A program made the position numbers and the translations under genes. Positions 60,001-63,790 of a DNA stretch of 64,000 bases are shown here, piece by piece. This DNA comes from Auanema rhodensis (Eukaryota > Animalia > Nematoda), in assembly GCA_964057225.1 (NCBI GenBank), contig OZ059899.1, forward strand, positions 5,580,001-5,644,000, written 5' to 3'. Every line of letters starts with the position of its first letter. Positions within the stretch are counted from its first letter, which is position 1. Below the pieces are notes generated by a model, which was given only the letters and a program-made list of their open reading frames with translations, was not told the origin of the DNA and did not search any database.

Positions 60001-62304
60001 TCTCTTCAAGGATGTAGTTTGATCTTCTAGCATTTCAATATTCTCCTTCAAACTTGCTGCATGCGAGTATATATTCTTTTCAATTTGAAGAATGGTAATT
60101 CTGCATGATTCACAAGTACGGAATCTGCTCATGCTTTCTGAAACATTCAAAAAAGAGGCGATTGTCACTTGACGGAATTCATATTCATATTGAAACAAAT
60201 GGTTCCTAGGCAGCAGAAGTTTCTTTATTCTTGAACATGACTCTGAATTATGGCAATTTTTGAAATTTTCTCCTTCCCAATATCGTTTTTTCTCTTTTTA
60301 CCTTGACTTGTTGTTGAGATGTGTGATGTTCAACACATTCCGATTGAACTTTCTGTTCTCTGTTTCGCCGTTCCCTAACTGCAACTGCTCCTCCTCTTCT
60401 TCTACTTCTATCCTGCTACATTTGTATGTTCAGGCTATTCTTCATCTATTTCCTATGTTTTCCTTCCGAACTATATTCATTGCATAACCGAGAATATCAC
60501 GTATCTTTAAACATTATAAGTTTATTCTTTTCACAATTCCGTGTCTATAACGTTTGTTACATTAAACAGGGAAAAGTTTTATGTTCTAAAGTGACAAAAT
60601 TTAAAAAAATGTTATTTTAAGAAAACTGATGCTTTTTCTTTTTCTTTTTTATAGTCTACTTTTGTTGCAAATAAGTTTGTTACTTACGGTGCACTTACTA
60701 CTCAAATTTCTTTTATCTATACATACAAAAACTTTTTTTCTTAGTATTATATAAGTTCAAAGTAAAGTCTACGTAGGTTTTAAAACTTTTAGAACAACAC
60801 TTTGAATTTCTTTACAAGATTCTATATTTAGAAGGATTTTAAGCTTTTTTTTTATTTTCGTGTTTATTTTTGATAATATTTATAAGACTACTTGTTATTT
60901 TTTCTCATTTCCTCTTGGTTACCCCAGAAGAAAGAATTTAAAAATATCTATGCTTCCAAAGATTTATTCATAAAACAACAGGTTTTCGTCTCTATTTTAT
61001 TTTTTTTCTTCTTCAATTTTTCTTTAATTAGATTGATGAGGACCAGCATTGATAAATAGCAATCCGAAGATCAAAATGATTATTTACTAATGCACTTATT
61101 ATCCATGTCATCTTTCGTTTGACTAAACTTTCTATTTTGCGCAAATCTTAATGAATTACAGTACAAGATTTGATAAATCTGTAGCTTTCATTTCCATTTT
61201 CTCATTTTAAAAGTAAATAATTTTATTTTTCTCTTGTATATTACGATGTTTCCTCTTTTTTTCATAAATATTAAGCTGCCTTCCAATACTTAATATAGCA
61301 TGAAGATTAGCATTCCTGAATATAGCTGACAGATGTTTTCTCTAAGCATCTAAAAAGATGCTTTATGTTGACATGAATCTTACCAAATTTTCCTGAAATC
61401 GGCAAAATGCTGAAAATATGAACGTTAGAAGTGTTTTTACAAGCATAATCTGATTGCATTCTCAAGTCGTTCCAACAATTCCTTATGCTCCTCCTCCACT
61501 TCTTCTCGCTGCTTTTTCAGTAGCCGTCTCTGGATATATTAAATTATCCGTTTATTTTTCTGTTCTTCCTTAAAATACTTATGATATTCATTAATTTTTA
61601 TTGATCTTTTTTTTCTTTTTTTTTGTCCGAAAATTCATTCTTCTCCAATTCTTTTTATTTTTCTCGTATTTTTCGTAATGAAAAATAAAAAAAAACTGTT
61701 CTGATATTTGGAATTACCATGATTGAGCATGATTATAGAAGCATAGGTTATTATAAATGATTTTAATTAATTTCTTTTAATTATATATTCTTTTGATAAT
61801 TCATCTTACTATTTAACTGTATATGTATTCCTTCGACTTTTCTTTCCGAATATGACCAGATTTCAGTTCACTTCTTCTCATATTGCTTTTTCTGGCTATC
61901 TATATCGAAGCGTGAGAAATCTCTATCTAAGTCAATGGAAACTGTGTTATTCATTGTCATTTCTCGCATATCCACATGTATTATCCTTCAACTCTTAATA
62001 TAATTAGCTAAACTACATTTTTTTGAAAAAAAAAATTTCTTGTTTTGAATTTTTTTATATTCATAATTATATTTTATAACAGCCTCATATTTGCTAATCG
62101 ATGGTTGAAAAGTTCGAACAGGATAAACGTCCCTAGGGGGCGGTCGCTTCATTTGCTTTTACCTCTACCCTCTTCTCTCTTCTCGTTCTACTCATACCAC
62201 TTGCCTGCGGAAACTCCAAACGCTATCGCATGCTAATCTCTTGTGTTTTCAGGAAACTCGGATATGAGTTGGATGGTCCATACATGAGCAAGACCCTGGG
62301 CTGA
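57095..62304 (+). CDS. elpc-3: Elongator catalytic subunit ELP3 (radical SAM + KAT)
   Basis: [24 protein letters not shown]...[69 protein letters not shown] and [11 protein letters not shown]. The last exon, 62253-62304 ([17 protein letters not shown]), follows intron 59494-62252 in the correct phase. Confidence 0.96.
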
Positions 62305-63790
62305 TGTCTTTTCTGGTATTCCTCGTCGTATATCTTTCTATTATCTGTTTCGTTACGGCTTCTTCAACCACTAGCCGTCTCGTATTGTCATCATCTACTA
62401 CTACTGAACCTTATTCGTCTTTATCATCCATTGTTTCGACAACAGTTTTTCCTTTACAAACAACATCATGGTCTATGGTGCCTGTTGTTGCAACAATAAA
62501 TTCTACCAAAGGCAACACTACTGATTCCACAACTGTAGTCATTACAACCTCTAATTCATCAGTTAATGTATCTAATAATCATAATAACCCTGCTACCTAT
62601 TGCTCTTCTTGTCTGTCATTACCTGTGGCCTTAGTATTTGCCCTACTCTTTTCTCTAACTATTCTAGTCGGAGTTTTGGGAAATGCTTTTGTTGTCGCAG
62701 TTATTGTTTCCGATAAGAAGCTACTCTTCTCATCTGTCAACCAATTTTTGTTAAATTTGGCTCTTGCAGATATAGGTAATTCATGTTATTTGTCTTTATT
62801 TCAAACAAGGTTGTGTAAGACAACCCATAATCGTGATAGTTGTAGTAGTAGTAACTATTTTTCTAAGTTTTCGTACCATCACCATTCATTTCTTATCAGG
62901 TAATCTGATTTTCTGTGCTCCCGATATGGCCATGGTTCTTTTGGATCATGGGTGGATATTGCCGGAAAGTTCTTGTCACTATTTACGTTTTCTACAAGAA
63001 TATTTCCTCTATGCTAGTGTGCTTTTGCAGGTCAGTATCGTTAATTCTGTGCGAATTTTCTGAAAATTTCCTAAATTCCTAAATTTCTACCAATTGTTTT
63101 TTTGTTTGTTGTTATTGTTGTTGGTCATATTGGTTGTATGTTATATATTTTATATATCAATCGTATTTTCCATGATTTCCATTTGGCGACAAATTAATAC
63201 ATTTGATATTACATCGATATAACAGAATTATCAAGAAAAACATGAAATCAAACTTAAGTATGAGTTGATTTGCTTGTTGACACATTAAAATTCCATGGTC
63301 GTTTGTGCTTGATCCGACTTATTGCGTGGGAATTTTTAATTGAAGGTAGAGATAGCTCTGCAAACATTTTTGTGGAGCAAAGATGATGAAAAGATATTAA
63401 AATTTTTCTTGATTTTTTCCGAAGGGATAATCAAACGACAAATGACATCTACATTTTAGATGTCAATCGGTATAGAACGTTTCTTGGCAATATGTACTCC
63501 TCTTCGAATGCAACGCTTTTCAACGAAAACTACCGTAAGTGTATTATTCTCGAATTATGTATTGAAATTCACTGATCTAAAATCTTACTAATATATCCAC
63601 AAAAGTATTGACTACATACATATTCAACTATTCTTGTTCAATATCCTGAATTCCAGCTGATTGTTGTTCTGAGCATGTGGTCGATAGCTGCTGCATTTGC
63701 AACACCCTATTTCATCTCTCAGGGAATCATCAGAGTTCCGCGGACAAATCAGAAATACTGCATTTGGAGAGGAATATCGGCTTCAACCAG
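62304..63790 (+). CDS. Class A (rhodopsin-like) GPCR, neuropeptide-receptor-like; 3' part runs off the window
   Basis: Exons 62304-62775, 62900-63030, 63460-63534, 63657-63790. Signal peptide and Ser/Thr-rich stalk, TM1 ...VGVLGNAFVV, TM2 NQFLLNLALADIG, ECL1 GWILPESSC, TM3 ...MSIGIERFLAICTPL (DRY-like ERF), TM4 MWSIAAAFATP and an ECL2 Cys. Confidence 0.9.

Follow-up and report, generated by a model that had tools for sequence, protein, structure and literature searches.

In the nematode Auanema rhodensis, a gene for ELP3 and a gene for an npr-33-like receptor stand on the same strand and share one base, the last of the ELP3 stop codon and the first of the receptor ATG. The stretch analysed, hereafter the window, comprises 64,000 nucleotides (nt) of contig OZ059899.1 (assembly GCA_964057225.1, positions 5,580,001 to 5,644,000, forward strand), and all positions are given within it. 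The reading towards which we lean, taken as a whole, is that these are interlocked genes giving two mRNAs from common DNA, the last coding exon of ELP3 being used a second time as the non-coding leader of the receptor mRNA. The features on which the argument is built are as follows, TM denoting a transmembrane segment.

57095-59493, + strand: upstream exons of ELP3 (elpc-3-like), with Pfam ELP3_N and Radical_SAM matches and splice joints in four RNA runs
59494-62252, + strand: last ELP3 intron, 2759 nt, GT..AG, single-copy, joint 59493/62253 in four of four runs
62100-62252, + strand: GC-rich end of that intron in the composition profile, with the GGGGGCGG motif, a candidate core promoter or outron
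62253-62304, + strand: shared exon, the last 16 ELP3 codons and stop, and the proposed 51-nt 5' leader of the receptor
62302-62306, + strand: TGATG, ELP3 stop 62302-62304 and receptor start 62304-62306 with one shared base
62305-63188, + strand: ELP3 3' untranslated region (UTR), at least 884 nt, from ELP3-joined contigs in four runs
62304-62775, + strand: receptor exon 1, with signal-like N-terminus, Ser/Thr- and NxS/T-rich ectodomain, CxxC, TM1 and TM2, from the reading frame, hydropathy and joint 62775/62900
62900-63030, + strand: receptor exon 2, end of TM2 to start of TM3, from joints 62775/62900 and 63030/63460, exact match to model P0002
63460-63534, + strand: receptor exon 3, in which ERF replaces the usual DRY, from RNA joints, exact match to P0002
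63657-63790, + strand: receptor exon 4, TM4, from joint 63534/63657 in three runs

Overlap of the ELP3 stop codon with the receptor start codon

Translation of 62254-62304 gives 16 codons of the ELP3 C-terminal tail and then TGA at 62302-62304, the A of which (62304) is base 1 of the ATG (62304-62306) of a class A G protein-coupled receptor (GPCR). The open reading frame (ORF) that starts there has 199 codons (62304-62903), the first 157 of which make up receptor exon 1; a GT donor follows directly after 62775. Because the receptor frame has a TGA at 62265-62267 (its stop-to-stop ORF is 62268-62900), 62304 is the first in-frame receptor Met. An earlier note, made from the sequence alone, had described a last ELP3 exon at 62253-62304 with a conserved C-terminus, the TGATG overlap, the stop at 62265 that makes 62304 the first possible Met, and a class A GPCR with a signal peptide. 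All of this holds: the translation agrees and the intron preceding the exon (GT..AG, 59494-62252) is confirmed by RNA, the coordinates and reading of the overlap are correct, the TGA is found at 62265-62267, the 328-residue protein model P0002 of a very close relative, Auanema sp. JU1783, matches Pfam 7tm_1 at 2.5e-36, and the hydropathy of the ORF from 62304 begins with a strongly hydrophobic, signal-peptide-like segment.

A TG after a TGA is, taken alone, not improbable. The presence of the receptor's only usable ATG 51 nt past the same acceptor in two further species, however, exceeds chance. The distance between the two genes is -1 nt, outside the range of SL2-type operons (about 100-400 nt), while stop and start overlap or lie a few nt apart as in termination-reinitiation, with TGATG here and 2-nt spacers in the two relatives (loci L003 and L133).

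With regard to the upstream gene, the exon translations match Pfam ELP3_N (1.1e-17) and Radical_SAM, and the spliced C-terminal 344 residues are uninterrupted ELP3 sequence; the two domains and the conserved C-terminus together identify the ELP3/Elongator catalytic subunit. Its start codon probably lies near 57095. Nine ELP3 introns are found spliced in all four RNA runs, eight of them (from 58121 on) measuring 41-79 nt and the last 2759 nt, that is, 35-65 times the length of the others. A copy-number check found the sequence of this last intron to be unique in the genome, and Rfam, tRNA and repeat scans of it yielded no RNA gene and no transposon-like repeat. Its final 150 nt are its most GC-rich part (47-48%), and the GC-rich 62100-62252 segment leads directly into the acceptor at 62252/62253, a consensus TTTTCAG.

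RNA forms across the junction

The RNA consists of contigs from four runs (X1-X4) of one study, aligned to 58100-64000; such contigs reveal existing forms rather than ends, strand or exact levels, and short spliced-leader tips are clipped from them. About one third of the sampled words of 57000-64000 are contained in the four runs, roughly the exon share, and the contigs derive from RNA since they are spliced on 58100-64000.

Past the joint 59493/62253 the same contig (depth 34-52) stays collinear with the genome, running from the ELP3 stop through receptor exon 1, the unspliced receptor intron 1 (62776-62899) and exon 2 into intron 2. The ELP3-joined contigs end at 63093 (X1), 63188 (X2), 62780 (X3) and 63030 (X4); each one either carries receptor intron 1 unspliced or breaks off where that intron begins, and none passes 63188. 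The 3' end of the ELP3 mRNA falls at about 63120-63220, within the 429-nt receptor intron 2 (63031-63459), where only a weak AATACA is found (63196). A canonical AATAAA at 62495 was considered as the main ELP3 polyadenylation signal and was ruled out, there being no drop in depth after it. Since its 3'UTR retains receptor intron 1 and ends within intron 2, the ELP3 mRNA cannot encode the receptor: reading from AUG 62304 on this form would give at most a 199-residue fragment with an intron-encoded end. No mature mRNA with both complete ORFs occurs among the contigs, from which a rare fully spliced form could escape.

Receptor splicing is seen at low depth. In X3 the assembly graph forks at the exon 1 donor into an intron-retaining contig (depth 31.7) and a form spliced at 62775/62900 (depth 10), ELP3 standing at 33.7, and the later joints 63030/63460 and 63534/63657 have a depth of 3-5, so that receptor joints overall lie at 3-10x versus 32-52x for ELP3. 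As the ELP3 3' end is inside receptor intron 2, receptor transcripts must splice past an intronic polyadenylation site. Upstream of the shared exon, RNA depth is zero at 62040-62236 in all four runs, and thus no unspliced leader enters from the intron. A 163-nt contig (60338-60500, depth 2.1, X1 only) lies in the ELP3 last intron on a local peak of 41-44% GC; either noise from pre-mRNA or a non-coding receptor exon upstream of the shared one could account for it.

Relatives and age of the pairing

Loci L133 and L136 were reached through the proteins P0032 and P0034, both returned by a phmmer search with receptor exon 1. In the 901-nt genomic contig L003, the same exon and acceptor type are followed by ...PYMSKNL-TGA-AG-ATG, where the ATG opens MNSTPS... 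and is the only Met of receptor exon 1. Loci L133-L135 read ...PYMSKDL-TAG-TG-ATG (MATSTSAP...), and here too no other Met of exon 1 is viable; in L133 the shared exon also contains, ahead of the ATG, a stop codon in the receptor frame. The receptor ATG is therefore exactly 51 nt past the acceptor in the window, L003 and L133, and in both relatives it stands 2 nt past the ELP3 stop. In more distant species the two genes are spaced as in an operon: 212 nt separate the last ELP3 exon (...PYMSKSL-TAA) from the npr-33 ATG in Pristionchus, 167 nt the ELP3 stop from the receptor ATG in L136 (GCA_043882145.1), and 244 nt the stop from the annotated receptor ATG in Anisakis simplex. The earlier note had called for a comparison of the receptor ATG with the ELP3 stop across nematodes; near-abutment recurs, at 2 nt in L003 and L133, whereas the exact overlap does not, and in the other paired species where it was measured the spacing is 167-244 nt. 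The spacer has collapsed, to 2 nt or to an overlap, only in the window lineage and these two relatives.

The outsized intron recurs as well. Within 9.7 kb upstream of the receptor in Pristionchus, L136 and Anisakis, the last ELP3 exon is found alone, which places the last intron above 9.7 kb; in L133 it measures about 1.9 kb, the other introns readable from the alignment being only tens of nt long. The last ELP3 intron is thus outsized in every paired species where it could be checked. In Heterorhabditis, ELP3 and receptor sequence are fused in one gene model (P0026). By contrast, no ELP3 sequence lies within 8-10 kb of the receptor ortholog in Caenorhabditis briggsae, C. auriculariae, Mesorhabditis or Steinernema, and the 5'UTRs of strongylid receptor transcripts (contigs L004-L006, 167-214 nt) are free of ELP3 sequence, so the shared leader is not universal. 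The pairing of the last ELP3 exon, behind its giant intron, with this receptor is ancient, being common to Anisakis and the rhabditine lineages, and it has been lost several times. The guess of an ancient linkage in the earlier note is thereby borne out by Pristionchus, Anisakis, Heterorhabditis, L003, L133 and L136; the linkage that it gives for the C. elegans cosmid ZK863 is wrong for this receptor, NPR-33 being F31B9.1 and ELP3 being absent from the 8-10 kb around the C. briggsae and C. auriculariae orthologs.

An alignment of the ends of this intron from the window, L003 and Pristionchus showed no conservation beyond the exon. The only similarity returned by blastn between the introns is a 30-nt block common to L003 and L133, CGATGAATGTTGCGCAACCATCTCCATGGT, which contains the palindromic TTGCGCAA and is 100% identical in L003:177-206 and L133:7721-7750, although the intron around it does not align. 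The block precedes the shared acceptor by 60-107 nt and may act on the receptor as a promoter or enhancer element.

As a further route to relatives, metagenomes were scanned for a degenerate GYELDGPYM-coding pattern; the 120 loci found included none with the KLGY-preceding intron and none with a receptor nearby. The ELP3 C-terminal motif is present in the ELP3 loci of many metagenomic contigs, and the scan was a dead end because GYELDGPYM is pan-eukaryotic.

The receptor gene

By its 7tm_1 domain and best matches, taken without a tree, the downstream gene codes for a class A GPCR of the NPR-33 orthogroup. Over its full length it is 55-64% identical to one receptor per nematode species, the closest named protein being 'npr-33' of Pristionchus pacificus (55%), whose name is the basis for the predicted orthology to C. 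elegans NPR-33; after these nematode receptors come the NPR-15-like receptors of molluscs, at 31-32%. In C. elegans, NPR-33 is F31B9.1 (PMC3527849), a neuropeptide receptor of class A for which NLP-70 peptides have recently been identified as activating ligands (PMC7619462). The window receptor shares with NPR-33 the 7tm_1 domain and the presence of orthologs across nematode clades. It differs in two ways: the Caenorhabditis ortholog is not beside ELP3, and the long signal-peptide-bearing N-terminus is specific to the window species.

P0002 exactly matches window exon 1 (from 62679) to exon 4 and most later exons, which first suggested that the window was JU1783 itself; in the C-terminal exon, however, about eight substitutions and one indel separate the two, so that the window belongs to a very close but distinct relative. 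The two genomes are of different size and composition, the window assembly having 181 Mb (window GC 30%) and that of Auanema sp. JU1783 (A. melissensis) 59.7 Mb at 37% GC (PMC9984802). The public P0002 model begins with 'MGNAFVV', its first codon corresponding to a TTG (Leu) of the window (62676-62780 region), so that it lacks the whole N-terminus and part of TM1. An RNA loose end past 63790 encodes VLFKWAEFIV, and the receptor gene runs beyond the window to about 70335 in window-equivalent coordinates. Exon 3 opens exactly with an ATG, at 63460.

The homology of exon 1 to P0001, P0032 and P0009 covers residues of about 54-157. Read from 62304, the N-terminus would consist of the hydrophobic signal-peptide-like segment and a glycosylation-rich ectodomain of about 100 residues.

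Proposed formation of the receptor mRNA

In the reading that we favour, the ELP3 pre-mRNA is cis-spliced from 59493 to 62253 over the 2.76-kb intron, translation ends at TGA 62302-62304, and a 3'UTR of about 0.9 kb takes in receptor exon 1, the unspliced intron 1 and exon 2, with its 3' end in receptor intron 2. The receptor mRNA, about ten-fold rarer than the ELP3 mRNA, would most likely arise from a promoter of its own within the outsized intron of ELP3, unless it derives from read-through ELP3 pre-mRNA. A spliced leader or an upstream non-coding exon would be joined to it at the acceptor 62252/62253 that ELP3 uses; the 51 nt that encode the ELP3 tail would then double as receptor 5' leader, and AUG 62304 would start the receptor.

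Joining by spliced-leader (SL) trans-splicing at the shared acceptor is probable. With no RNA upstream of about 62237 and no acceptor between the ELP3 stop and the receptor ATG, this, or the splicing of an upstream non-coding exon to the same site, is the simplest course in a nematode. The SL1 leader sequence is GGTTTAATTACCCAAGTTTGAG, and the SL1 exon with its GT donor (GGTTTAATTACCCAAGTTTGAGGT, at most one mismatch) occurs 3433 times in the genome, far above the roughly 110 copies of C. elegans; with thousands of SL1 genes the machinery for trans-splicing is present. The SL1 copies form extended tandem arrays whose repeat units measure about 252 and 341 nt (L011, G000:C3:6741531-6766487; L012, C3:14134320-14139114). 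A promoter inside the last ELP3 intron is suggested by the outsized length of this intron, by its single-copy sequence free of hidden elements, by its GC-rich end with GGGGGCGG and by the block shared between L003 and L133. With regard to translation, AUG 62304 is favoured because its position is conserved, a 57-codon frame is open after it and the resulting N-terminus resembles a signal peptide.

Several points weigh against this reading. The proposed leader carries three upstream AUGs (62264, 62273 and 62284), the context of AUG 62304 is weak (gggctgAUGu), and a start at Met58 would match the N-terminal length of the orthologs. Receptor residues 1-48 found no match by phmmer among 1.84 billion representative proteins, and the window lacks, at the corresponding position, the 30-nt block of L003 and L133. 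The RNA comes from a single study and in contig form only; the contigs show neither a spliced leader nor an upstream exon joined to 62253, which, as they clip short tips, is silence rather than absence, and the form spliced at 62775/62900 may be receptor mRNA or a spliced ELP3 3'UTR, the contigs not assigning it to either. The proposal that one exon is coding for ELP3 in one transcript and leader of the receptor in another, which the earlier note had offered as one of two possibilities, nevertheless fits all the data and is the likeliest reading.

A more far-reaching version, which we hold to be doubtful, combines one 3' splice site acting as an ancestral binary switch with translation of the receptor by reinitiation after a short upstream ORF. 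Each transcript over 62253 would become either ELP3 mRNA, by cis-splicing, or receptor mRNA, by trans-splicing, and this switch would date back to the ancestor that ascarid-like and rhabditid nematodes have in common. With the spacer collapsed, an upstream ORF of 5-6 codons, opened by the ELP3 Met codon (of PYM), which is invariant, ends 2 nt before, or on, the receptor AUG in all three species (window, L003 and L133).

Alternative explanations

The receptor might instead start at Met58 (62475), on an mRNA beginning or trans-spliced within exon 1, TGATG then being incidental in the ELP3 3'UTR. We regard this as unlikely, although several points favour it: Met58 stands about 45 residues ahead of the CxxC motif and gives an ortholog-like N-terminus, the first 48 residues are without homolog, the frame 62304-62474 (57 codons) was open in 5-10% of controls and would thus be open by chance that often, and the public model P0002 of the near-identical relative starts still further downstream. 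On the other side, an ATG occupies the identical position in two relatives, where it is the sole Met of exon 1, a clean signal peptide precedes the long glycosylation-rich ectodomain when reading begins at 62304, and there is no good acceptor between 62304 and 62475.

Transcription of the receptor could also begin inside or just before the shared exon, without splicing at 62253, in which case the exon would be shared and the acceptor single-use. The GC-rich, Sp1-like segment directly upstream (62100-62252) would suit such a start, as would the lack of any spliced leader in the contigs. We consider it improbable: depth at 62040-62236 is zero in the four runs, though RNA as sparse as depth 2 did yield a contig in another part of the intron, and most nematode genes with a consensus acceptor near the ATG are trans-spliced.

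In the true bicistron of the earlier note, ribosomes that have terminated on the UGA of ELP3 would resume at the AUG overlapping it, so that the ELP3 message itself would yield the receptor. This can draw on the UGAUG overlap in the window, on stop and ATG within 2 nt in two relatives and on contigs that physically link ELP3 exons to receptor exon 1. It is nevertheless very improbable: the ELP3-joined contigs keep receptor intron 1 unspliced, or stop where it begins, and never pass 63188; reinitiation on this form yields at most the truncated fragment described above; the 158 nt of spliced ELP3 mRNA before the stop contain no UGGGA (motif 1 of the termination upstream ribosome-binding site); stop and ATG are 167-244 nt apart in more distant relatives; and eukaryotic ribosomes reinitiate with very low efficiency once they have translated an ORF of about 550 codons.

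Comparison with known systems

As far as the account of Williams et al. (1999) given in PMC9258526 goes, in the SL1-type operons of C. elegans and C. briggsae the polyadenylation site of the upstream gene abuts the trans-splice site of the downstream gene, the coding regions lying apart. Measured against that account, the window locus is alike in having same-strand genes without a spacer and upstream and downstream mRNAs that would be competing outcomes of one pre-mRNA. It differs in that the coding regions themselves touch (TGATG), that transcripts of the upstream gene reach 884 nt or more into the downstream gene instead of ending next to its trans-splice site, and that the only acceptor available to the receptor is an internal cis-splice acceptor of ELP3.

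Three further arrangements invite comparison. In nematode hybrid operons and genes with intronic promoters, the first downstream acceptor serves both cis- and trans-splicing, usually giving isoforms of one gene. The window locus has a similar outsized intron before a shared consensus TTTTCAG acceptor, and its downstream product would be separately regulated; here, however, the exon codes for the tail of one protein and would be the non-coding leader of an unrelated one, and the internal promoter is itself only a proposal. The cha-1/unc-17 locus has a shared 5' non-coding exon, with one gene nested in an intron of the other, and is conserved across phyla; it likewise makes two unrelated proteins from overlapping transcription units with a shared exon, whereas in the window the exon held in common is where the coding region of the upstream gene ends. 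Termination-reinitiation at UGAUG or AUGA overlaps operates in calicivirus VP1/VP2 and influenza B M1/BM2, and the overlap of stop and start codons is the same; in contrast, the window has shown no single mRNA with both ORFs and no UGGGA, and its relatives have spacers of 2 nt and of 167-244 nt. The locus is a variant of the known nematode gene-overlap and operon architectures, in which the new element is that the shared exon is the upstream gene's 3' coding exon.

The gene upstream of ELP3

Upstream of ELP3, on the + strand at 54143-56900, lies a gene with a sub-threshold Pfam match to MTPAP-like_central (E = 1.4e-4), a palm domain of poly(A)-polymerase/TUTase type. The match is compatible with the guess of usip-1 made in the earlier note, without proving it.

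Significance

The locus offers a concrete and conserved case in which two unrelated animal genes would be inseparable: the upstream region of the receptor lies in the last ELP3 intron, and the last ELP3 exon and its 3'UTR lie on the receptor leader and first exons. It also explains why gene predictors fuse or truncate the pair, as in the public models of Heterorhabditis (P0026) and Auanema (P0002). In a culturable worm, it provides a tractable place to study the competition between cis-splicing, trans-splicing and intronic polyadenylation. The binary switch, if true, would tie a neuronal neuropeptide receptor to a tRNA-modification enzyme. The main value of the finding lies in the deep conservation of the interlock, which may be the reason that the two genes have stayed neighbours in spirurine as well as rhabditine nematodes.

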